Assembly (NCBI GenBank): GCA_965644315.1
Contig: CBFFRQ010000068.1
Location: 992,001-1,056,000, forward strand
Direction: 5' to 3'
Length of the DNA: 64,000 nucleotides
Source: Caecitellus pseudoparvulus
Taxonomy: Eukaryota; Protista; Bigyra: Bicosoecida
Positions 8,350 to 48,232 of this stretch are shown here, in pieces; the stretch's first letter is position 1, and every line of letters begins with the position of its first letter. The position numbers and the translations under genes are program-made. The notes below the pieces were generated by a model. That model worked only from the letters and a program-made list of their open reading frames with translations. It had not been told where the DNA came from and ran no database searches.

Positions 8350-10988
8350 CTACTCCACAAGCAGGTCGTCCAAGTCTGCATCACCAAAGTCGTCCTCTTT
8401 CGAGCCTGCTGGGGCAGACCCAGACCCTGTCGCCACCGCCTGCTCTTGGGGAGCTGAGAAGCGGTCAGGAGGTGCCGCGTCTCCCGGGCCACCTCCGCGT
8501 GTCGGCGGCCCATCATCCATGGCAGGCGCATAAGAGTCTCCTCCGCGGGCGGGGGGCCCCGGAGAGGCACCGTAGCTTTGGTCCCCACCGTACGCACCAA
8601 AGTCTCCGCTCTGAGAGATGCTGCCTGGCGAGTCCATGCCCGCAGGCTGCAGCATGCTTTGCTGCAGGGTCTGGGCGCGCTCGAGTTTCACAAGCTTGGC
8701 TTCGTACGCGGCGTAGTCCAGCTGCTGCTCTCGGCACAGGGCAACGAGGAAGGTCAGGCACTCGACGTTCTCGGGGAAGCGCTCATGCACACGGCGGTAT
8801 AGGGACAGCGCCTTACCGTACTGTGCCAGGCGGCGGTAGCAGGAGCCTACCATGAGTTGCCACTTGACCTCCTTGGGCTGAATCTCCGCCGCACGCTGGA
8901 AGAAGGTGATGGCCTTTTCGTACAGCTCAGACTTGACGTACCAGATGCCGAGCCACGACACGACGTCCAGGTTGGAAGGCAGGTAGCGGCAGGATTCGTT
9001 CTGGTAGTGGAACGCTTGCGTGTCGTCGCTGTCTTGCGCAAAGATGCCCCCAAGCCGCGCCAACGCTCCGGCATCTGACGGTACACGGGACACGAGCAGC
9101 TGGAAGTACTTGATGGCGGCGGGCAAATTCTGCATGGCCTCGTGCAGGCTAGCGATGTGGTAAATGACCTCGGGGGACGCCGGCACCAGGGTGTGCAGCT
9201 TCTCAAAGGCTTGCAAGGCTTCATGGTACACCATCAGCTGCTTGTTCACGAGGCCGAGGTTGAAGATGGCCTCCACACAATCAGCCTCGACTCCAATGGC
9301 TTCCAAGTACATCTCCTTGGCCTTCTCCAGCTCATCCCGCTCCACGAGGCAGTTCCCCATGTTCACCAGGGCACGGGCGTTGTACCGGTCATGCTTCACT
9401 GCCAGGTCAGCGTACTTCTCTGCCTGCTCCAGGTCACCCTCCAGGAAGTAGAGGAAGCTCAGGTTGGTGGCGGCCTTGGCCTTCAGGTTGGTGTCCTTGC
9501 GCTCGAAGGCCTTCAAATCCTCCACTGCGCGGTCAAACTGCTTGTGCTGCAGGTAGTTCAGTGCCTTGATGATGGACAACTCAGACGCCAGGACGTCGTA
9601 GTCCACCCGCAGACGCTCAACAACCCACTCGTAGCCCCGCTCCCAGTCCCCAGGGTACAGCGACGGCGCGATGAGTTTGGAAGCAGTCATGATGTAATCC
9701 TCTGCCTTGCGCCGCATGGAGCGCAGTTGCTGGGACAGGCCATCCTTGCGACGGGCCAGGACCTCGCTGGACACAGTGTCGTCCAAGCCCAGCGCGTCCT
9801 CGTCATCGTCGTCTTCCCCCATGCCGGGGGGTGGGATCTGCAGGAGCTTGCCGAAAGCAATCTTCATGGTGTCAGTGTCGCCACGGGCGTAGTAGCACAC
9901 CACCAAGTTGAAAGCGGTTTGAAAGTCAGGCGTCGTGGCCATGATGTTTTCGAAGCTGGAGATGGCGTCGGGGTACTGCTGCAGCTTCACGAAGGCGATG
10001 CCGATGTTGCGCATGATGCGCAGCTTCAACTCTTCGTTGGTGGGGGCTACCTGGTCCAGCGCCATGCGGTACATCTTGATCGCGGATGTGAAGTTGCCCT
10101 GCGCGAAGTACACATTGCCCATGTTCACGCGCAGCCGGCCCGCAGTCAGGTACGTCTTGTTCTTCACTATCAACGTGTATGTGTTTAGAGCTTCTTGGTA
10201 CATGCTGTTCATGGCGTAGGCGTTGGCGAGGTTGAAGCAGACGCAGTAGGTGAGGTCCATGTTGATCTGGTCGGCCAACTTGCGAGCCTCCCTGAACTTC
10301 GTCAGCTGGCGCTCCTTGCGCCCGGCTTCCTTGGCGCGCTCCAAGGCCATCACAGGGTCCCCTGCTACTGCGGCCTCTGCAGAGGCTTCCAGCAACGCAT
10401 TCACCTGTGTGAGAGTTTGGCCGTAGGTGTTTGGCAGCCCACAGCGTGGAGCCTGCACGAGACGCACCCGCTTCTCCATCTCCTTCGTCTGTACGACTGC
10501 ACGGTCAACCTCCTTTTCGACCAAAGCTGGAACGTCAGCGGCAGCACTCTGGAAGCCGGCAGCTGCCCGGCCGGCACTCTGTGGAGCGCGATGGTGAGGC
10601 GTGCTCCCTGCCAACATCGCGTAACGCCAAGTGCACGCAACGCACACTGTACCCAGCTGCCTTGACGCTGGTCATGGGGCGTGCACGCCCTCCAGCAGCA
10701 CCAGTTCCTGCACGTGTCCCAGTGGGCATGCGCCCTGTTGCTCTTCCGCCCATCATTGCACTAGGAGGTGGCCTGCGAGAAGGGGGCAGATGCAGGGCGT
10801 TTCTGCATGAAACCCTGCACCTCCTGGGGTCAGGCACGGCGGCCGCACCCTTGCCCACGAATGGGATTCATGGCCCCAGATGGACCAAGAGCCCCTGTTC
10901 CAATTGGCACCCCCATGCTTCCCAGCCCAGCTTCGTCAAGGCCGAAGCCGCCATACAGGTCGGCATCACCACCTGGGCTCAAGGCCAT
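8350..10988 (-). CDS. IFT88: Intraflagellar transport protein 88 (TPR)
   Basis: ALERAKEAGRKER, NMDLTYCVCFNLA, RLRVNMGN..AIKMYRMALDQV, AATNLSFLYFLEGD, DRYNARALVNMGN, EVKWQLMVGSCYRR. 5' exons MALSPGGDADLYGGF and RPMTSVKAAGY are separated by introns. Confidence 0.97.
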
Positions 10989-29773: not shown

Positions 29774-32355
29774 GGCGAAATCAAGGAGGGAAGATAAATA
29801 TGAAGTTACTTTTCAGGTCAAGGCGCCACAGCCAAGGCCACAGGGACGAAGCCGGCGCTGCGGAAAGAGCTGACGAGAGTTGCCTCGGCGTGGTGCTCCA
29901 AGGAACCCGAGCACACTGCCCCTGCCGCGAAAGACACAGCCAGCTACTGAGGAATGAACAAGTCGTCGGATACGGGTGATGACATTGAAATGTGTCACTT
30001 CTCACTCTGAGACTCTGTAGCACCCCAGCCACGCTAGAAGTGAGCCTCATCCATCCTGGCCTGCACAACTTGCAGAGGCAGGCGCCTCACGGGGCACTGC
30101 AGTCACGTGTCAGCGCAATCTTGTGGTGCAGTGTCTCCACTCCAGCAGGCTGGTGTGGCGATTGGGGCCCGCCCATGCCTCGTTCACTTTCCTCGGAAGT
30201 CTCCTTGGCTGCTGACCGGACCCACTCCGCTCCGACGCCGCGTTCGCCATCGACCAGTCGGCTGCCAGGCAGTCATGTTCAAACTACTGCATGTCTGGCC
30301 AGGATGTTACTGAGGAGATCTCTGCGTGTGCTGAGCAGGCTACGGGCTTGGTCAAACTGACATGCCAATGGAGGAGCAACGGCTCCACCGACCCACTCAC
30401 GTGCTGAGAGGTAGCGAAGCAGACGGGCGGGCCCCGCTGCTGCAGTGGCTACACGCGAGTCAGGGCAGGGGCGTTGTGCGCTGCGCGAACCACAGTCTGG
30501 CGCTGGCGGACGACACTGAAGCAGTTTCTGGCCGCTCGAGCGACAAGGTGCAGGCTTCAGCAGTTGAACTACCACAATGGACACAAAACTCCGAACCCGC
30601 TCTGAACGCTGCCGCACGCATCTCTTGCTTCTTTCATGCTCAGCTACAAACTGAAGCCCTTGTCGCCCAGTGTCTGCCATAGGCTGCTTGGCTTAGCTGC
30701 TTGCGGTAATTGCTCGAACAGAAGTGGGCAGTAGGTCGCTCAGGGCCAGTGGGAACTTTGCGTCACCCAAAGAACAAGTAAATGGCAGCAGTGGTCCCTG
30801 CCAAGGGGTGTGGTGGTGGTGGCACTGGTGAGGATGGCGCCAGTGTCACCCGACTGCTGGCGTGTCTCGAGAGGTTGCAGTCTGTGCCAGGCCGCGACAT
30901 CAAGCATGCACGCGCGCTACGAGGGCTGGCTGCAATCGGACACGACATAGCACCTGCTGTGGGTGATGATTCGCAAGATGTCGGCCTGTCCGAGCTGGAG
31001 AGCCTGCTGCGTGATGCAGGGAGTGCATTGTCTACGCTTGCGGGCCTGGACGAGAGCGGACATGCGTGTGCTGCCCTGCAGTACCTGTCCTTCCGGTGCT
31101 TCTGCGCGGTGGACGTGCTGCGGCAGGCGACATCTGGTGTAGACGTGGAAGCGTTGCCGTGTGGGGATGCGGTTTGGGGGCCGATTCTGGAGGCGTGGGA
31201 CAGCGTGCATGACGTATGTGCGGGTGTAGACACGGCCCTTGAGGGTTTGGCGCGGTGGTGGACAGAGCGCCAGGGGCGGGCTGTGTATGAAGCTGGTACC
31301 GTGGGCTGTGTGGTACTTGGAGGCGATGGGGAGGCAGCAGTCGCTGCTGCGCTGGCCTCCATGCGGCAGCAAGCAGAATGGCTGCGTGGTGGTGCAGCAG
31401 GTGGGCTGAAGAGCGAGGCAGCAGCGGCGCACTTGGACTCAGCCGTGACCGCGGTGGAGAAGCTGCGTGCTCTGTTGAAGTGTGGTGTGGGTGTGGGTGG
31501 CGGCAGGTTGAAGGCACTCCCTGGCTTGGACCTGGCCGGAGGCGTGGCGTGCAGGATGAGCAAAGATTGCAGTGTGTACCTTGCTCAAAGCCGAATCATC
31601 CCTGATGCCAAGCCCCAGGCTCTTGAAGTGGAGCACTGGGCAGCGTGTGTCGCCGCAGGTGCTGGGGCGACGAGTCAGAGTGTGTCGGCTGTGATGCGCG
31701 CAGAGGCGTTGCGAGTGGCCAGCGGACTGCCAAAGCTCGCACAGATCCCACTCTCAACGTTTCACTGGAGCATCGCTGTGCTGGGGGTGGGCCGGATGAT
31801 CCAGTGGGTGCGCAAGGCAGCGTGGATGTGCAGGTACAGTGTGAGGCAGGCTGGCCGCTGAGCAAGTTTGTGGAGGATGCAGCGTGGAGCACCGTGGATG
31901 CGAGTGTCAAGCAGCGCGTGGCTGTCAAGGTATTGGGCGTGTGTGCTGTGGCGGAGGCGTGTGGAGTGGAGCTTGGAGACGTGGGTGAAGGGAGCTTTGT
32001 GGTGGAGGGTGTGGGGGGGGGCAGTGTGGGTGATCTGGTGGAGGCACTGGATGGTGGTGAGTGTGGGGTGGTGTTGAGTTCATGTTGTAGAGCGTGGTGT
32101 CAAGAAGAAGTGGGTGGATGTTGTCTGACGTGTTGGGGGCTGTAGCTGGTGCGAGAGAGGGTGGAGCTACAGTTGATGGTTGGCTTGCTGATGCTGTGCG
32201 GCTGTTGCTAGCTGGGCGTCCGGGAAGTTGCATGGCTGCGTACTCCAGTGCCTGTGCGTCATGTAAGCGGGATGTGGCCTGCATGGCGAGCGTGGATGCT
32301 GAGGTGAATGCTTGGATGGAGAGGCAGGGTGTGAAGAAGGAGGTTGCGGGGGAAG

Positions 32356-32670
32356 AGGATGGTGGTTTCATTGCAGCGTGCAGGGACGGAGGTGTGTCTA
32401 AAGTGCGTGAACTGCTGGCGCTGACCGGATCTCGGGAGGTGGACGTGCACGTTGGGGATGAGGATGGGCCTGAGGCTGGCTTCCGAGCTGCCTGCGAGGA
32501 AGGCCACACCGCTGTGGTGCGTGAGCTGCTGGCTCTGACCGGGCACCGAGAGGTGGACGTGCATGCGAGGTTTAGGGCTGACCACGAGCATTGCTTTCTG
32601 GTCGCCTGTGACGGCGGCCACCTGGCCATCGTGCGCGAGCTGCTGGCTCTGACTGGGCACCGAGAGGTGG
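32356..32670 (+). repeat. Ankyrin repeat array, 5' block (3 x 114 bp)
   Basis: Three units of F.xACxxG..VRELLALTG(S/H)REVDVH, the last truncated at REV by the insertion. Confidence 0.9.
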
Positions 32671-32671
32671 A

Positions 32672-35358
32672 AAATACTCTGGCCCTCCGGGCCATGCCTG
32701 CGGCATGCGAGACGCTGTCTACCGTCCCCATGCCCTGCACTGTGCGCTGGCTGTGGCCTTGGGCCTCCGGCCGGCCAACCTGCCCCACATGGACTTCCAG
32801 CCAAGGCGACCTGTGGACGCCCATCTGCAATGCATTGCCAGTGCTCCACACAGGGACTTCGCATTCACGCTCTCTGTGCCGCACTGGGCGCTGCGGCAAC
32901 GGACATCGCTGATGTGCCCGCCCAGGCCAGCGGACATCAATGGAACCTTCCACAGCAAGCACCACACCAGCCCTCCGCGCAGTGCCTCAGCCACCTCAGG
33001 CCCATGCACGACATGCACTGCCCTTCCCATGTGCTGAAGCGTCGTGCACGTCTTGCCTGAGGCGCGCCTGCCTCGGCACTACCGTGGTCGCGCGCAGTGG
33101 AAGGCGCGACACCCAGTGCGAGTGGTGCGGCCACAAGCGCCAAGCCCTACACGAGTGGCCTCAGCAGCCGCGACCGCCACATGGCACACCGGACATGCAC
33201 GAAAGCTGCCAACTGCAGGCATGGGGCCCTGGGACCGCCACAGCGATCATGCTGGGCCCATGCCCTGCACTGTGCCCTGGCAGCGGCCTTGGGCCTCCGA
33301 CCGGCCAACCTGCCCCACATGGACTTCCAGCCAAGGCGACCTGTGGACGCCCATCTGCAATGCATTGCCAGTGCTCCACACAGGGACTTCGCATTCACGC
33401 TCTCTGTGCCGCACTGGGCGCTGCGGCAACGGACATCGCTGATGTGCCCGCCCAGGCCAGCGGACATCAATGGAACCTTCCACTGCAAGCACCACACCAG
33501 CCCCTCGCGCAGTGCCTCAGCCACCACAGGCCCATGCACGACATGTACTGCCCTTCCCATGTGCTGAAGCGTCGTGCACGTCTTGCCTGAGGCGCGACTG
33601 CCTCGGCACTACCGTGGTCGCGCGCAGTGGAAGGCGCGACACCCAGTGCGAGTGATGCGGCCACAAGCGCCAAGCCCTACACGAGTGGCCTCAGCAGCTG
33701 CGACCGCCACATGGCACACCGGACATGCACGAAAGCTGCCAACTGCAGGCATGGGGCCCTGGGACCGCCACAGCGATCATGCTGGGCACGGCACCCACAA
33801 TGACTCGGCCATGGCCCGGAGAGCCGCTGCGCCAAGCACGCCGTAGGCAGGCCCACACCCGGACATTCTGTCACGTGTGCACTGCCTGGCCCATGCAACA
33901 GTACCTGTGCACAGGGTGTAGCAGCTTAGCCCTGTGTCATGCTGCACCAACGGCATTAGTGCTCAGACCGACGCCCGTGTGTGTGAGGTGCAAGGCCGGG
34001 TCGGAGAGTCGGTGGAGATCGGGGACGGCGGTGCCAGCAGGCGCCCGCGCACGCAGGAGGGTACAGGTGTGGCACAGTGCAGCAGTGTGGCGAGGCAGCT
34101 GTGTGTACCTGCTGCACATGGCTTTGGTGTCGCTCGTTCCAACTTCGTTGGCTTCGGCCAGCTGCGGATACGGGCACCCTGGTGCTCTTGCTGGAGGCAT
34201 GAGCAGCCGATGCACGCCCTCTGCACATGCCTAGGCCCAGCATGAACCACAATGCATGTTCTACGACGGCTGGGCTGCTGTTCTGGAGCAAGTGCACTGC
34301 CGCCGGCCTCTGCCGCCGCGCGCTGCTGCTTGCGCAGCGCGCGCGCGGCGAGACCGGCGGCGGCAACTCGGACAACTGCACGCTCTGCAATGAGTACAGT
34401 CCAGGCACATGTACTGGATGTGTCTGCGGCCCAGCAGGTAGCCTCAGCTGGGCGGCCTCCCGCTGCCGAGCAAGCACTTGCTTGTCCAGCAAGGCCTCGC
34501 CCTGGACCGGTCAGCACTCCCTGCACCACAAATCCCTTCGCCTTGGCACTGGGGCAGGCACCCGACTTGCATATGGCTCTGTGGCACGAGCCATTGGAGC
34601 TCTCCTGCTTACACAAGCACGGAGCTGCCGTGCGAGACGCCAGCCATGCACCAGACCAGCGCAAGGCTCAGCACTGCGGCACTTCCCTGAGCCACGGCAA
34701 GCGATTCTGCGCCAAGCAGAGCAAACTTCCCTGCCATATGCCGTACCAATGCCCTGACACACTGTGCCAGTGCGCCAGGGTGCTCAGGTGGCCTGGCACA
34801 GGCCTGCCGAGGACAGCGCCCAGCCAACACGCCTATGCAGCAAAACCTGCACAGGCCACCGGCACAGAACTGGCCACAGCGCAGCAGGCAGTAGGCCGAG
34901 CATGCAGTATTGTACCCATAGGCCAGGCGCATAGCATTTACAATGCCGTTGGTCCACAGCCCTGCCCTGTGGACTTGCGCGTGGAAGGGGCACAGTTTGG
35001 CACCGAAAACAAGTGTGCGCACGCCCTGCCACGCAGCGCACGCGCCCCGCCCTGCACGCACCATTGCATTGTATGTGCACTTTGTAGGTCCTTGTGTGGG
35101 GCACCTCGGAAGGTGCGCGCGTGTCCTGGTGCGTGAGATTGAAAACTCGTGGAATTTCAATTTCCGGACTGGTTAGTGCGCCCTGCACCTGGAATATGCA
35201 CTGCACGCTCTGCAAAACACGTGCAACTACCATGTTGCATATGTACGCAGGTAGTGGGTGCGATTGCGTTGCCACGGGCCTTCTAGGGGCTTAGTTGGAC
35301 TTCTTGCGTGAGCGGCCCCCTTCCCCCACACCCCCTGAACCTAACGGTAGACAGCGAA
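32672..35358 (-). mobile_element. Non-autonomous Helentron/Helitron2-like (HINE-type) rolling-circle element, about 2.69 kb
   Basis: Clean insertion into GAGGTGGA|CGTGCATGCC; the empty site is visible in the paralogous repeat near 36261-36290. 13-bp inverted repeat CGCTGTCTACCGT (32713-32725) / ACGGTAGACAGCG (35344-35356), about 42 bp from one end and 2 bp from the other. Two 6-bp hairpins at 32680-32694 and 32693-32707. Minus-strand ends read TT... and ...TATTTT. No TSD and no transposase ORF. Confidence 0.8.
32727..33787. repeat. Tandem duplication, 2 x 530 bp, inside the mobile element
   Basis: 32727-33256 is repeated at 33257-33787. I count about 12 substitutions and no indels. Duplicated junk ORFs (32705/33097, 32937/33467) reflect it. 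Confidence 0.95.
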
Positions 35359-36720
35359 CGTGCATGCCGCACACCAGGGCTGGCCTGAGGCTGGCTTCCG
35401 ACAAGCCTGTCAGAATGGACACGACGACGTGGTGCGCGAGCTGCTGGCGCTGACCGGATCTCGGGAGGTGGACGTGCACGTTGGGGATGAGGATGGGCCT
35501 GAGGCTGGCTTCCGAGCTGCCTGCTTGTATGGGCACGTCGGTGTGGTGCGTGAGCTGCTGGCTCTGACCGGATCTCGGGAGGTGGACGTGCACGTTGGGG
35601 ATGAGGATGGGCCTGAGGCTAGCTTCCGAGCTGCCTGCTTGTATGGGCACGTCGGTGTGGTGCGTGAGCTGCTGGCTCTGACCGGATCTCGGGAGGTGGA
35701 CGTGCACGTTGGGGATGAGGATGGGCCTGAGGCTGGCTTCCGACAAGCCTGTCAGAATGGACACGACGACGTGGTGCGCGAGCTGCTGGCGCTGACCGGA
35801 TCTCGGGAGGTGGACGTGCACGTTGTGGATGGGCGTGGGCCTGAGGCTGGCTTCCGACGTGCCTGCTTGTATGGGCACGTCGGTGTGGTGCGTGAGCTGC
35901 TGGCTCTGACTGGGCACCGAGAGGTGGACGTGCATGCTGGGCCTGAGGATGTTCCTGAGTTCGGCTTTCTGGTCGCCTGTGAGAATGGACACGACGACGT
36001 GGTGCGCGAGCTGCTGGCGCTGACCGGATCTCGGGAGGTGGACGTGCACGTTGGAGATGATGATGGGCCTGAGGCTGGCTTCCGAACTGCCTGCGAGGAA
36101 GGCCACACTGCTGTGGTGCGTGAGCTGCTGGCGCTGACCGGGCACCGAGAGGTGGACGTGCATGCGAGGTTCAGGGCTGACAATGAGCATTGCTTTCTGG
36201 CCGCCTGTTACGGCGGCCACCTGGCCATCGTGCGCGAGCTGCTGGCTCTGACTGGGCACCGAGAGGTGGACGTGCATGCCGCACACCAGGGCTGGCCTGA
36301 GGCTGGCTTCCGACAAGCCTGTCAGAATGGACACGACGACGTGGTGCGCGAGCTGCTGGCGCTGACCGGATCTCGGGAGGTGGACGTGCACGTTGGGGAT
36401 GGGCGTGGGCCTGAGGCTGGCTTCCGAGCTGCCTGCTTGTATGGGCACGTCGGTGTGGTGCGTGAGCTGCTGGCTCTGACTGGGCACCGAGAGGTGGACG
36501 TGCACGTTGGGGATGGGCGTGTGCCTGAGGCTGGCTTCATCGCTGCCTGCCAAAAAGGACACTTGGAGGTGGTGCGTGAGCTGCTGGCTCTGACTGGGCA
36601 CCGAGAGGTGGACGTGCATGCTGGGCCTAAGGATTGGCCTGATTTCGGCTTTCAAGTGGCCTGTAGGGTCAGGCACCCCGATGTGGTGCGCGAGCTACTG
36701 GCCCTGACTGGCCGTCGCGC
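35359..36720 (+). repeat. Ankyrin repeat array, 3' block (12 x 114 bp, high internal nucleotide identity)
   Basis: Twelve 38-aa units such as HVGDEDGPEAGFRAACLYGHVGVVRELLALTGSREVDV, with the ACxxGHxxVVxxLL ankyrin core. Confidence 0.95.
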
Positions 36721-37290
36721 CGTTCCTTTGCGGACGAGGCTGCGAGCAGGAAAAATGGCCGCGCGAGCAGCCAAGAGTGCAGTGTGGGATGGGACTAGCA
36801 CTCGCCGTGGCAGAAAGGCCCTGTTGCTGTTAAGGACATTGCACCATGGGCAAGTGTGAGTCCCGGGTCTTCAGAAAGAGCACAACCTGTGTGCGGGTTG
36901 AGACCCCACCGCTTGCCCGCAAATGCCCAGGCGGCTGGTGCAGGGAAAGAGTTGCGCAGCGGCTCTTTGTCGCCCTCTTTCATGCAAGATGGACGTTTCA
37001 CGATTTGGATTCATCTTTTCTTTGTGCTTCTATTGTCTTCAGTAGGGCGCACGCTGTTACGTTTACTTTATAGCAAAGCAAGCAAATACAAGCCCACAGG
37101 ATACACTCTTCTTGAGTACCACGCTGCTCGACTTCACTTGTCTCAGAAGTACCACTCAACTCCACTTGCCTCAAGTGTCCGGCTCTGTGGCGTGTCTCTC
37201 AACTGGCACCAGATCTGCAGCACGACTTCCTCTTCAGCAGTGGGCCAGCCAGCCTCACATGTCAGCGGTTCCGCCGGGCCAAGCCAGTCA

Positions 37291-38994
37291 ATGATCACAA
37301 CGGAGGAACTGCCTAAATCTATGCGATCATTTGCACTTCGTCATGGGGAGCTGCTGTCCATGGCGTGCATGCCAGCCTTGCTGTGGCTGAGCGCGTGGGT
37401 AACTTTCTGCGGGCTCAACGCAGCCGAAACGCAGCGGCAGGGACTCGAAAACCACAGTGCAGCGACACGCGGCGTGCTGGCTCCATTGCTGAATGGGGTT
37501 TCTGGTATGGACTGCTTAGTTTTGCTTTGGGGGGGACTCGTTGGCGCGAGACTCCGGAAGCTGCTATTCGACGAGAAATCTCAGGAAGAGAGAAGAGCAA
37601 ACCCTCAGCTGCTAGCTTCAGCGGCAAGCCGGGGCTCAAGAGCACTTCAAGGTCAAGATTTTCGTGAAATTGTCTGGCTAGGTGTGCTTCTGCTTGGCAT
37701 GACGCTGCTACAGGCTGCGGTGCAAAGTGTGACTGCCGACACACATGCTCCCAGCGATGACCTCCAAGCTGCTGTTGCTGATGCCGGGGCGCTTCATCCT
37801 GTCCAGTGCTCCCTTGATCACGCACCAGACATGGTGTCGGCCTTAGTTGGCGGCAAGCGTGCCTTCCGAAAGCAGTGCAATCCGATCGGCCTCAGATGCT
37901 TGCTGGTTGCAGCTGTGGTCGTTGCTACTTGTGCAGCGGCAGGCCTCAGCACTTCGTGGCTTCCACGAATCAACCCACTGCCCTCGCACACACCATGGGT
38001 CCTCTCTGGTACATTGGCCTTTGCTGCTTTGGTCGCCTTGTTGGTGGGAGGCCCACGTGCCCCCAAGTTGCTGGACCGCACAGTGGACATGAATCTTGGG
38101 CAGCTGAGCCAGCAGTACTTTGCCTTCTGGACTCTCGATGTTTGGGTGCATGGCGCGCTCTTCACCACAGGGCTTGTAAGTGGCCTTCTGAATGCTTGGA
38201 TTACGCTCAGAGTGGCTTTGTCTTCGGCTCGTAGCGTGATCGGTGCTGTATCGCTGCTGTGTGCCGCATGCGCGCTTGCCTGCTTTCCCCACGGGCCGAC
38301 TTCCCTTCTCCTACACGCAAGGTTTGGCCTGCCGTACCAAACCAGCATGATCACTTTCAGGGTATTGTTGGGATGTGCTGCCGCACAGAGTTCAGTCTTG
38401 GTCATGCACTGCATTAGGGTTCTGGCCAACGCACGCCCAGGTCTCACTCTTTGCGGTGGACTTGTCTTGCCAGGGGATGTTCTGACCATCTCCGCCATGC
38501 CTTGGGCGCTCATGATGCAAGTCGCGTGTGCAGCGTGCCCTGACTGGTTGCCAAGGGCGCCCGTTTCCCTCCTGGTGCTCAGCTGCACTCTCGCCCACAG
38601 CACACTGGCAAGTGCTCTGGCAGGATACATTCAGGAGGCAACAGGGCTACGCCACAAACAGCCTGTGATGCTCACAATACGCCAAATTGGAGAATGGCCT
38701 TCAGTCAATCTTGACGTGAGTGGTGCGGTAAGCCACTCCGTTGGAGGGAGCGACAGCTCGCCATCCACCAGCTCGGACGAAAGCGAAGACGAGACTACCG
38801 GACAAGCAGGCCACTGGCGCCGAAGGCGGCCAACGGGAACACAACGAAGCGCCAGCCCCATCACTCAGCACCTTGGTGCCCTCATGCAGCTCGCAGATGA
38901 AGACAGTATTTGGGCGCAGTCTGATGAGGATGCACAGGCCTGGGTAGCACAGCAAGTGGAGCAGCTGCTGCCTGGTGATGGGCATGGTGTCTAG
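37291..38994 (+). CDS. Multi-pass membrane protein, possibly a divergent acyltransferase-3 family member
   Basis: Intronless ORF with about ten hydrophobic segments and an acidic/Ser tail. GVSGMDCLVLLWGGLVG weakly resembles the GxxxVxxFFxLSG motif. Confidence 0.55.
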   Translation: MITTEELPKSMRSFALRHGELLSMACMPALLWLSAWVTFCGLNAAETQRQGLENHSAATRGVLAPLLNGVSGMDCLVLLWGGLVGARLRKLLFDEKSQEERRANPQLLASAASRGSRALQGQDFREIVWLGVLLLGMTLLQAAVQSVTADTHAPSDDLQAAVADAGALHPVQCSLDHAPDMVSALVGGKRAFRKQCNPIGLRCLLVAAVVVATCAAAGLSTSWLPRINPLPSHTPWVLSGTLAFAALVALLVGGPRAPKLLDRTVDMNLGQLSQQYFAFWTLDVWVHGALFTTGLVSGLLNAWITLRVALSSARSVIGAVSLLCAACALACFPHGPTSLLLHARFGLPYQTSMITFRVLLGCAAAQSSVLVMHCIRVLANARPGLTLCGGLVLPGDVLTISAMPWALMMQVACAACPDWLPRAPVSLLVLSCTLAHSTLASALAGYIQEATGLRHKQPVMLTIRQIGEWPSVNLDVSGAVSHSVGGSDSSPSTSSDESEDETTGQAGHWRRRRPTGTQRSASPITQHLGALMQLADEDSIWAQSDEDAQAWVAQQVEQLLPGDGHGV

Positions 38995-45251: not shown

Positions 45252-48232
45252 CTAGTCCACGCTGCCGAAGCGCATGCGCAGCCATGCTTCGAACTGAGGG
45301 TCAAACCGTTGTGGGATGTGATGTTCATCCCTCAGCTCTTTGTCCAGCTCGACTGGGTTGGCGGACCTTGCAATGAACTCCGCCTGAGCCCCGCCCATCT
45401 CGCCGACACCCCCCGCCGGCACGAGGGACGACGTGGAAGCCGCCCCCGTGTACGTTTTCCCTGCAATGATGGCTTGATGCCGCGCCTCCTCGGAGCCTGC
45501 CCAGTAGGGGGGGATTTTCGACGCCCGCAGCGCCTCTCGCGCTGCCTTCCCGCCTGCCATGGTGGTCTGCGTTCGGTGTAGCTCGGTTGCAGCCTTGGCC
45601 GCAGTCACCTTGGCTTTGTACTCCCGGCTGGCCTTCGATTTCATTTGCTTGTGGAAGAGCGACAGCGCGTGGCGATTCCACGCAGACGTCAGTGAGAGGG
45701 CGTTGCGGGGCACGGTTGGGTCCCAGTCCATGGCTCGCTTGGCATCACCAGAGAGCCGGTACTTGCCCGGGGGGCGCTTCACCCTGTCGGGGTCGGGCAG
45801 CGGCCACGCAGCCTCGGCTTCCTTGGTGTCAGCCCTGTATGCTGCCTTGGCTCCTTTATGCCGCTTTTGGAAGGACTTGAACACGGCAGCTGCAGCAGCG
45901 GTGCCTTTCGTGTACGTGCGCATCTCGCGGGCGAGCAGGTCCTCCTCTTTCGCTATGGCCTCCAGCTGGGCGGCGCGTCGCTGAATGTCTCTCCGCCGCT
46001 GCTTTGCAGCCGCTTCTCCAGCCCCAAGGGCATCTTGCAGCTCACCCGCGAGCTTTTCATCAGCAATGCCGGAGATCAAGGACACTGGGCTCTGCCCATT
46101 GTTGTTCACTGCATGCGTGTTTGCTCCAAAAGCAACGAGCAGCTGAGTCAACTCCACATCCTTGGCCATGATCGCAAAGTGCAGCGGTGTCATGCCGTAC
46201 TTGTTCGTACTGTTCACATTCTCGCCCTTCTCGGCCAGCAAATATCGTGCCCTGCGCAGGTCCCCATCTTGGCAGGTCTTCAGGATGCTGCGATTGTCAA
46301 GCAGCAGGCAGCACTGGGCAGCCCGGCGCTTGCGACCAGCTGCACCGGAGGCCCCTGAAAACACTGCCAAGCTGGCTGAAGAACTCTCAAGCTTTGCAGC
46401 AGCCAGGGCCGTCAACCCACGGTTATTCTTCGCGCGCGTGTTTGCTCCCATGTTCAGGAGCACGTCCACAGCCTCGCTCCACCCATTGCGAGCAGCAAGA
46501 ATGAGCGGGGTGTTGCCATCCTCATCTTTCGAGTGAATGTCAGGGTACACTCGCTGCGCTGATCCTCCAGCCGGAACCCACATATCAATGACACGATTCT
46601 TCGTCGCTTCTTCCTGGCGCTGCTTGTTGATGTGGTGCATGCGCTTGGTCTGGTGGCCTGCATCCACACGCAGGTACGACGGCGACCGGTCCACGTGCAC
46701 TTGCCACCCACGCTTCTTGAGGCCCTCCAACTTGGACACCTTGCCAAGCTTTGCCAGCTCGCGGAACTCCTCGTTGATTTGGGCCTGCGTCTCCCTCATG
46801 GACAGGCGCTCCTGCTCCTTCAGCAGCTGCTCATCGGTGGCCTCCCTTGCCAAGCCCCTGTGCTGGCGTCGGCGGCTCTGTGGCTTGGACTCGTCACCGT
46901 CCGCCGGCATGTCCCCTCCCTCTTTCAGCCATGGTTGTTCTGCAGTCAAGGCTTCGGCTTCTGCGTCGTGTTCCCAATGCTCCTTTGCGGACTGCCTTCT
47001 TCGTGCCCCGCTGCTGCTTTTTGCCCGCCCCCCGCCGATGTCCGCCACGAAGAGAGGCGGGTTCAGCTGCGATTCAAAGCTAAACGGACTCCGGCACACC
47101 TCTTCCAGGGCCACTGCGAACCCTTCGAAACACTGTGGCTCCATCTTGACCACCATGCCCACTGCGTCGTCGCCGTAATCCACCTTGCCAAGGGCCCCCC
47201 ACTTCATGGCTTCAGCTGTTGCCGCGTAAACGTCTTCATACGCCACGCGCATGAGCCCGTTCACCATGCCTGATCCCCCTCGATGGGCAACATATCGCAT
47301 GTCGCCCACGTGCCCCATGCGGTTCTTCGCAGAGACGCCCACCGTACCGGTGTACAACCCCCCGCTGGCGTCCTCCTTCACCTCGCCTGAAGGTGGCTTG
47401 CCTGTGGCCCACTTGAACAGCTTGAACCGTTTCATGACTTCTGATGGCCGCATGGAGTCAGGAAAAGTCGCTTCGACCTTGGAAACCCCCCCCTCATCTG
47501 GCATTTCCCGGTTGCTGCTGCCTGGTCTGAGGCAGGCCTCGGCATCGCGGTTCGCAGCGTTGGCATTCCTGAGCACTACACCCCGGACCGTGGACAGCGG
47601 GTTTGAGGGCCCCTTTGTGAGTTCTGACAGGTCCTTCTTCGCGACGTCTTGGTCTTGATTTGCCCTCTTTGCCTGCTCCAGCTCCATGCGCTTTTCGGGG
47701 GCCAGGTACAAGTTCTCCTGCGAGGAGCATGAGAATTAGAGTCCCTGACCCGCCAAGGCTGCAGCCAGCCAAGTGAACACGCACCAGAGGAATGGCGTCA
47801 ACCAATTGTGGTGCATCCGTGAGCAAAGGGCGGTCTGAGTATCCGCTCGCGTACGCCACCCGGAGGCGCCTGCGAGATCCGGCACGGCTTGGTGTGCGCG
47901 GGTGTGACTTGCCCACAACGCAGCTTGCGCTGCCTCACTTCTCTTTGGGGGTCTGATACCAGCCAGGCTCCTCAGAAGGCTTGGGTGGGTTGCGAGCCAG
48001 AGCTCCTTTCATGTCCAGGTCTGCCACACGCCCACTCAAAGCATACGCTGCCGAAGACCTGTACTCGTCCAGCCGGCCGTGTGAGGCGCGTGCGGAATCT
48101 GGGTGAAGATCGTGAGCGCACTCGCAGGACGCACTGCATGATTAGCTTTGTCTCCTCATCTTGCACTCGTTGGAGCCATGGCGGAAGCTTGGGGCCATCG
48201 TCTCTTCGGGAGTCAACCTTGCTAGTTGCCAT
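45252..48232 (-). CDS. Ankyrin-repeat protein with long unrecognised flanks
   Basis: DEDGNTPLILAARNGWSEAVDVLLNMGA and NKYGMTPLHFAIMAKDVELTQLLVAFGA. Main exon 45252-47717; the 5' exons (MATSKVDSRR..) are inferred from GT-AG sites. Confidence 0.75.

Follow-up and report, generated by a model that had tools for sequence, protein, structure and literature searches.

A fixed scaffold that carries a hypervariable face is a hallmark of recognition repertoires, among them the NOD-like receptors (NLRs) of fungi, plant NLRs, variable lymphocyte receptors (VLRs) and engineered designed ankyrin repeat proteins (DARPins). The window analysed here, a 64,000-nucleotide stretch of the genome of the protist Caecitellus pseudoparvulus, contains a gene of this general design on the forward strand (30782-36859), which is made up of an N-terminal domain (N-domain), 15 ankyrin units and a C-terminal tail, and which carries three lesions. 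Among the closest described systems are fungal NLRs, whose ankyrin repeats are reshuffled and show positive selection at five positions, located in the inner helix and the hairpin (Dyrka et al., 2014; PMC4986451). Ankyrin, TPR and WD repeats of high internal conservation (HiC), that is, at least 85% identity across a stretch of 100 amino acids or more, are found in fungal NOD-like receptors such as HET-E/HET-D and Pa_3_8560 (PMC4986451), and the candidate receptors of brown algae, of the LRR-ROCO (leucine-rich repeat) and NB-ARC-TPR types, are diversified by exon shuffling (PMC11378527). We found no paper on the family to which the window gene belongs, and a search of the literature for a protist ankyrin family of this type gave only these fungal NLR and brown-algal analogues. 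We consider it probable that the window gene is one member, likely a recently disabled one, of a large lineage-specific family of putative binders whose arrays evolve by ordinary duplication and unequal exchange.

The array consists of 15 in-register units, numbered U1 to U15 from 5' to 3', each of exactly 114 bp (38 amino acids) and falling into two blocks of three and twelve. The first block (32331-32671, forward strand) holds U1, which starts at 32331, is N-cap-like and divergent and lies 39-59 nt away from the other units, followed by U2 (start 32445) and U3 (start 32559); these were placed by in-register translation and by the close match of U2 and U3 to U10 and U11. The second block (35359-36727, forward strand) holds U4 to U15, with unit starts at 35360 + 114i, and is supported by the repeats themselves, Pfam Ank_2, AlphaFold2 and Foldseek. 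It closes with the C-cap-like U15, after which a tail of 44 residues runs up to the stop at 36859. Tandem Repeats Finder returned a 114-bp period (11.1 copies, 35382-36642) and a 342-bp higher-order period with scores of 1288-1514, and a direct-repeat search added the three-unit block, at 32357-32656. A first-pass annotation, made from the sequence alone, had claimed 15 exact 114-bp units, and register, Tandem Repeats Finder and translation all bear this out; the scaffold and the loop and helix-1 alleles that it listed are likewise all present as written.

The array was matched by Pfam Ank_2 at E=2.5e-34 (118 bits against a cutoff of 27.3), with Ank_3, Ank and Ank_5 also above cutoff. An AlphaFold2 model of the array, built from 14 family rows, had a mean predicted local distance difference test score (pLDDT) of 84.8 and a predicted template modelling score (pTM) of 0.80, and in it each unit is predicted to form a hairpin at positions 5-8, a first helix at 11-19, a turn at G20-H21 and a second helix at 22-29. 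The best solved structures found for this model by Foldseek were the DARPin 6mol (E 2e-10), ankyrin-1 and AnkB, all with a probability of 1.00. We conclude that the array units are true ankyrin repeats, which, as modelled, stack into a solenoid of helix pairs and hairpins. The 38-residue period, found in 472 of 476 near-full-length family units as against the canonical 33 residues, is a length variant that still lies within the ankyrin fold, the five extra residues sitting after helix 2 and in the hairpin.

For family statistics we used 37 regions totalling 233 kb, which contain 483 units of exact length. Among these units, the only positions with an entropy of more than 2 bits are 5, 6, 7, 8, 11, 15, 18, 19 and 22, together with position 34, and all other positions are nearly invariant. 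Variable positions 5-8 form the tip of the hairpin, and positions 11, 15, 18, 19 and 22 lie on the side of helix 1, where their i, i+4, i+7/8, i+11 spacing places them on one helical face. When the units are aligned by HMMER with 4gmr, a designed consensus ankyrin, unit positions 6, 7, 18 and 19 correspond to consensus positions 2, 3, 13 and 14, unit position 4 corresponds to consensus position 33, and the P9-E10-x11 stretch falls near consensus position 5. The positions that Binz and colleagues are said to have randomised in DARPins in 2003 are consensus 2, 3, 5, 13, 14 and 33. We infer from the model that the nine variable positions lie on the canonical ankyrin binding groove. The claim that variation sits on the ankyrin binding face is thereby upheld, both by the overlap of hairpin tip and helix-1 face with the positions randomised in DARPins and by the mapping of the variable sites onto the AlphaFold2 structure, in which they occupy the hairpin at 5-8 and the helix-1 face.

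The units U2-U3-U4-U5 differ from U10-U11-U12-U13 by 5, 6, 0 and 9 nt, respectively, and this four-unit block duplication, with about 94% amino-acid identity over 152 amino acids, lies within the HiC range of internal conservation given above; the mean identity among all units of the window array is only 71%. Two other pairs are nearly identical, U5 and U6 being 1 nt apart and U8 and U13 being 3 nt apart. Unit U7 is an exact hybrid, in which bases 1-42 are those of U5/U6 and bases 43-114 are those of U4/U12, with a breakpoint within bases 23-42, a span that contains the PEAGF block. The allele pairings previously listed for the loop and helix-1 modules can all be found: loop VGDEDG with helix LYGHVG (U5, U6), QNGHDD (U7) and EEGHTA (U2), QNGHDD with AAHQGW (U4, U12), and LYGHVG with V(G/V)DGRG (U8, U13). 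The LYGHVG helix carries two tails (Ser-type and His-type) as well as two loops, so that one to two further exchanges in the long scaffold are needed. On this evidence, one duplication of four units, one duplication of a single unit and two to three exchanges would suffice to explain the window array, in which alleles recur because of recent block duplication.

Recombination tests were run on the 12 distinct internal units of the window array. The pairwise homoplasy index (PHI) was significant (p<0.0002 for 5-site and 10-site windows, p=0.007 for a window of 15 sites), and the four-gamete test gave a minimum of seven events (Rmin = 7), in the intervals 6-12, 12-15, 15-17, 17-39, 41-51, 51-90 and 90-99, some of which may reflect recurrent mutation at hypervariable codons. 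Together with hybrid U7, these tests yielded the mosaic signal that the first-pass annotation had proposed to look for. In the family at large, PHI gave p<0.05 in 17 of 23 arrays. Unit pairs with identical hypervariable residues had a proportion of synonymous differences (pS) of 0.036 in the embedded conserved codons as against 0.126 in the long scaffold, from which it follows that the two halves of the unit have separate histories. We conclude from these sequence comparisons that mosaicism by exchange within conserved scaffold DNA is real and general across the family. Such exchange is nevertheless ordinary, as unequal crossing-over and gene conversion act in any tandem repeat, and no dedicated shuffling system stands behind the shuffled look of the array.

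The suggestion that exchanges map to the CCTGAGGCTGGCTTCC block did not hold, since the intervals lie all along the unit and only the span of the U7 breakpoint includes the block. The wider picture of combinatorial reassortment stands in part: mosaic units and the exact hybrid U7 are there, but the alleles are private to one gene, variation across the family is near-continuous and few events are enough. The loop and helix alleles of the window array are all absent from the 36 further family regions that were sampled. Among the 483 family units there are 454 different unit sequences, with 277 different loops and 365 different helix modules, and loop and helix diversity on this scale speaks against a cassette library.

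The window gene is not continuous, and its N-domain and array pieces were analysed separately. By tblastn with two metagenome proteins, P0003 (847 amino acids) and P0021 (717 amino acids), in which an N-domain of about 520 amino acids is followed by 38-residue repeats, the N-domain was placed at 30860-32100, in three successive frames and with no gaps in the protein alignment. All of its parts lie on the forward strand. The first, in frame A and lineage-specific (30782-31750), has 50-53% identity to P0003 and P0021 and is shared with the paralog L032. It ends at a first frameshift, two additional bases, TC, at 31751-31752 (the CTC of the paralog is CTCTC here), seen in the DNA alignment to L032 and as a gapless switch of frame against P0003. 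The second part, in frame B (31753-32120), matches P0003 residues 322-435 at 68% identity, and ends at a second frameshift at 32120-32121, where the L032 alignment shows that one T has been lost from a short T run (TGTTG as against TGTTTG). The third part, with the linker, is in frame C (32121-32330); P0021 residues 426-624 align from 32118, and the open reading frame (ORF) of the paralog is continuous here.

The closest paralog, L032, lies 350 kb away on the same contig and is 88.5% identical at the nucleotide level, and its open frame of 782 amino acids reads through the N-domain. The N-domain match at the window locus has an open frame of only 359 amino acids, whereas nearly all other full-length matches have 600-1900. 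Since the window has neighbouring ORFs of 1100-1700 amino acids with no break in them, the assembly contains few indel errors and the two frameshifts are probably real mutations. With two frameshifts in the N-domain and an insertion in the array, the sequence indicates that the window copy is probably disabled, apparently recently broken, and thus probably not a working receptor.

That insertion is a Helitron-like, non-coding repeat element of 2687 bp (32672-35358, forward strand), which splits the codons of the scaffold motif REVD|VH; its precise excision brings the array back in frame. It has at least seven further copies, of 89-99% identity, and all copy ends that could be read lie inside ankyrin units of other genes, at GTGGA^YGTGCA (again inside the REVD|VH codons). 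Copies at this same site are found on contigs C151, C69 and C209, and on C23 with a small rearrangement (L044-L050), so that at least five ankyrin genes, the window gene included, have been hit there. Head-to-tail dimers of the element are present on C151 and C209. The elements resemble one another far more closely than does the repeat DNA that flanks them, a difference in favour of independent, site-specific insertion. Read on the minus strand, the element opens with TC and carries, some 9 nt from its 3' end, a palindrome of 13 nt, and there is no target duplication; these features, with the tandem copies, are the reason why we call it Helitron-like, with the conserved repeat scaffold as its target. 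It had no Rfam match at E<=0.1, and it contains a 530-bp tandem duplication (97% identity; 32727-33026 and 33257-33556) that other copies share. The locus L032/L051 (C68:667989-674694, minus strand) has an intact N-domain and an array split by a different insert of about 2 kb, which lies between GTGGT and GCGCGAG (scaffold position VV|RELL). An 851-bp core of this insert is 75% identical to window 34213-35059 and recurs on contigs C175, C157 and C56.

The N-domain of L032, P0003 and L034 had no Pfam match at E<=1, and neither PADLOC and NCBIfam nor a profile search of PDB gave a match; likewise Pfam, PADLOC and NCBIfam revealed no NOD, TIR or HET domain and no other known domain of signalling or death. 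An AlphaFold2 model of the domain from an 11-row alignment was unusable (pLDDT 37.6). In a language-model search, the nearest neighbours carrying a Pfam family all belonged to the kinase/APH families (0.92-0.93), whereas the N-domain profile, when set against the genuine kinase P0065 with hhalign, gave a probability of 0.1. A kinase-like (pseudokinase) N-domain is a lead only. At the other end of the gene, the family C-terminal tail with its stop (36728-36859, forward strand) consists of W.GTSTRRGR, a hydrophobic run and R, and is found in most paralogs and in the metagenome protein P0009. This tail ends most members, and a KRPRP-like basic stretch often follows W.GTSTR.GR, the hydrophobic run and R. 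Right where the ankyrin gene stops, an ORF of 712 amino acids (36856-38994) begins in a different frame; it has many hydrophobic segments and no Pfam match.

The first-pass annotation had proposed a search for paralogous arrays with the same scaffold, and there are very many, so the array is not single-copy: in the 30.6-Mb genome, a search with the array gave 209 scored matches out of 655 candidates and a search with the N-domain gave 80. Two main gene types can be distinguished, a short N-cap type that often occurs in tandem clusters and a long N-domain type. The window gene and its nearest paralog join a long N-domain to a short-type tail, which suggests exchange between sub-families. Outside the source genome, the search with the array gave proteins of 50-60% identity from metagenome assemblies and from a single, very fragmented NCBI assembly, and from nowhere else; assembly GCA_024449685.1 holds relatives. 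A search of 5.8 billion proteins with the N-domain gave eight matches, all metagenomic. In one of the eight, P0108, the N-domain and two ankyrin units precede a series of Sel1 repeats that closely resemble one another, and the N-domain accordingly pairs with more than one class of repeat. The window also contains an ordinary ankyrin-repeat gene of 33-residue period (45252-47708, minus strand; Ank E~1e-16), which is unrelated to the 38-residue family. As to the host, the IFT88 gene at 8350-10644 (minus strand) has stramenopiles as its nearest named relatives (47-55% identity), including Heterosigma, brown algae, Hondaea, oomycetes and pelagophytes, and matches metagenome contigs at up to 78%; the proposal that the DNA came from a protist is thus confirmed and narrowed to a stramenopile, a marine flagellate.

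Selection was assessed by Nei-Gojobori counts on independent unit pairs. The ratio of the proportion of non-synonymous differences (pN) to pS is about 0.1 in the scaffold, which indicates that the scaffold is under strong purifying selection (omega ~0.1). At the hypervariable positions the outcome depends on how pairs are chosen: omega is 0.83 (0.70-0.98) when they are chosen on total distance and 1.29-1.42 when they are chosen on scaffold distance, and on the latter choice positions 5, 8, 11 and 15 reach 1.6-1.8, with confidence intervals above 1. Pairs matched on the long scaffold only had a hypervariable pN of 0.313 and an omega of 0.8-1.3, with a pS of 0.255 for the conserved codons embedded among the variable ones and of 0.360 for the variable codons themselves. 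Silent sites between arrays are near saturation (pS 0.48-0.64). Within the window array, hypervariable pN is 0.487 as against a pS of 0.446, and scaffold pS is 0.258. The four newest duplicate pairs (U2-U10, U3-U11, U5-U6 and U8-U13) differ by 15 changes, 10 of them non-synonymous and 5 synonymous; the boundary of the insertion accounts for one of the ten as an artefact (U3, codon 38), and position 15 is altered in three of the four pairs. These counts indicate that the variable face evolves about tenfold faster than the scaffold, at about the silent rate, and that omega at hypervariable sites is not robustly above 1, its value turning on the choice of pairs and of silent sites. A dN/dS at or below 1 at the variable sites had been named in advance as an outcome that would count against a diversified recognition module; with about 0.1 for the scaffold and about 1 (0.8-1.4) for the variable sites, the result is borderline by that measure.

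The reading that we regard as probable can be set out as follows. A family protein combines an N-terminal module (in this sub-family the domain of about 520 amino acids) with a 38-residue ankyrin solenoid and a conserved basic tail. Blocks of one to four units duplicate within arrays, and unequal crossing-over or gene conversion in the near-identical scaffold DNA gives rise to hybrid units, with the nine face positions free to vary at roughly the silent-site rate while the scaffold is held. The family as a whole would then serve as a germline repertoire of intracellular protein binders of diverse specificities, of which the window copy would have been disabled by two frameshifts and the site-specific Helitron-like insertion. 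Several points weigh against this account. An omega of about 1 is expected just as much of a surface without constraint as of one under diversifying selection, and the placing of the variable sites at the surface is drawn from modelled secondary structure, helical periodicity and alignment. PHI may be inflated, as changes of several bases in one codon can make adjacent sites compatible. The frameshifts could be errors of the assembly. Finally, the insertion could be spliced out as an intron: a GT stands right behind GAG, there is a CTAAC, and ACAGCGAAC is preceded by a TAG, an arrangement that would allow in-frame splicing to RE-TAN-VH, and in that case the array might still be read.

A stronger version, to which we give a minor share of the probability, is that the family, including the window locus, is an immune-type repertoire for non-self recognition, under diversifying selection, in which unequal recombination has been selected for new specificities. 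This would agree with the location of the variable sites on the canonical binding face, with the higher omega values obtained for scaffold-matched pairs, both overall (1.3-1.4) and at positions 5, 8, 11 and 15, with the repeated change at position 15 among the newest window duplicates and with the upkeep of hypervariable diversity despite a homogenised scaffold. The family is, moreover, large and tandemly clustered, the joining of the N-domain to Sel1 repeats in a metagenome relative recalls the modularity of NLRs, and the same pattern is known from fungal NLR ankyrin repeats (Dyrka et al., 2014; PMC4986451). However, omega falls below 1 with total-distance pairs, and to 0.73-0.87 against same-codon silent sites, the searches for signalling and death domains found none, and the window copy looks broken. 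The earlier proposal of a recombination-diversified recognition module therefore survives in that exchange is real and variation lies on the binding face, but the exchange is ordinary, diversifying selection is unproven, no known signalling domain accompanies the array and this copy is probably disabled. The antiviral role that had been attached to it is pure conjecture. We give a similarly minor share of the probability to the broader idea that the family, of some 80-200 genes, is a previously undescribed kind of protist intracellular receptor, with a selected and reshuffled ankyrin sensor, a novel N-module (possibly a pseudokinase) in place of the NOD switch, and scaffold DNA that serves as the landing site of a Helitron-like element, possibly as an in-frame intron.

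It is improbable that a tandem repeat was collapsed or mis-joined in the assembly and that the mosaic order or the frameshifts arose in this way. The array does contain exact repeats, of 132 bp at most, and U4 is identical to U12, but long reads far exceed such lengths, the contig, of 1.48 Mb, has the locus in its middle, the 114-bp register is perfect and the frame open over 1.5 kb, the long neighbouring ORFs are intact, and dozens of other arrays show a like structure. Least credible of all is a programmed cassette system with a library of loops and helices and directed recombination at the PEAGF block, as in the lamprey VLR or antigenic-variation loci. All that speaks for it is the look of reassorting alleles in this one array and the U7 breakpoint span (23-42), which includes the block, while the window alleles are absent from every other sampled array, distinct loops and helices abound, exchange intervals spread over the whole unit, whole-block duplications explain most recurrence, and no silent partial cassettes were seen, all matches being parts of full genes. 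Cassette-based diversification is thus largely refuted, with no donor library common to the loci among the 36 other sampled regions.

The presence of such a pattern in a heterokont protist, with a 38-residue ankyrin unit and no NOD, would widen the known range of recognition repertoires, and the family would offer a natural library of stable binder scaffolds. The locus itself provides a clean, dated snapshot of array change, in which a block has been duplicated, an exact hybrid unit has formed and a transposon has struck. There is a caution in it as well, in that a mosaic look needs no special mechanism, and positive selection is unproven.

The comparison with fungal NLRs, to which the first-pass annotation had likened the array, applies to the repeats and not to the rest of the protein, in which no NOD or known immune signalling domain was found. 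Like the HiC repeats of those receptors, the window family has near-identical units with a few hypervariable positions on the concave face, in its inner helix and hairpin, repeat number and order that are altered by unequal exchange, large paralogous repertoires, and an N-terminal module that is combined with different types of repeat. Unlike them, it has no NACHT or NB-ARC domain, its N-domain is unrelated to any known family, its unit has 38 and not 33 residues and its host is a stramenopile, and positive selection has been shown in the fungi only. As the NOD domain is lacking, the window array protein is not an NLR. The expanded ankyrin families known from intracellular bacteria and giant viruses (for example P0041 of Legionella and the viral-metagenome protein P0034) have in common with it a scaffold of the VVRELLAL.G.R..DVHA type, at 32-41% identity, but their periods are 32-35 amino acids and they have neither the N-domain nor the conserved tail. 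The brown-algal candidates, which have been proposed as immune receptors, resemble the window family only as a stramenopile repeat family whose units are reshuffled at the DNA level; their units, however, are separate exons shuffled via introns and stand beside a GTPase or NB-ARC domain, whereas the window units are contiguous and intronless and exchange within the coding scaffold. With the DARPins (6mol, 4gmr) the array shares the fold, the capped consensus repeats and the coinciding variable positions 6, 7, 18 and 19 (and 4 and about 11); it differs from them in being natural, in having five extra residues per unit and additional variable positions at 5, 8, 15 and 22, and in the large N-domain and the basic tail to which it is joined. 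We conclude that 'natural DARPin-like' is a fair structural description of the array.

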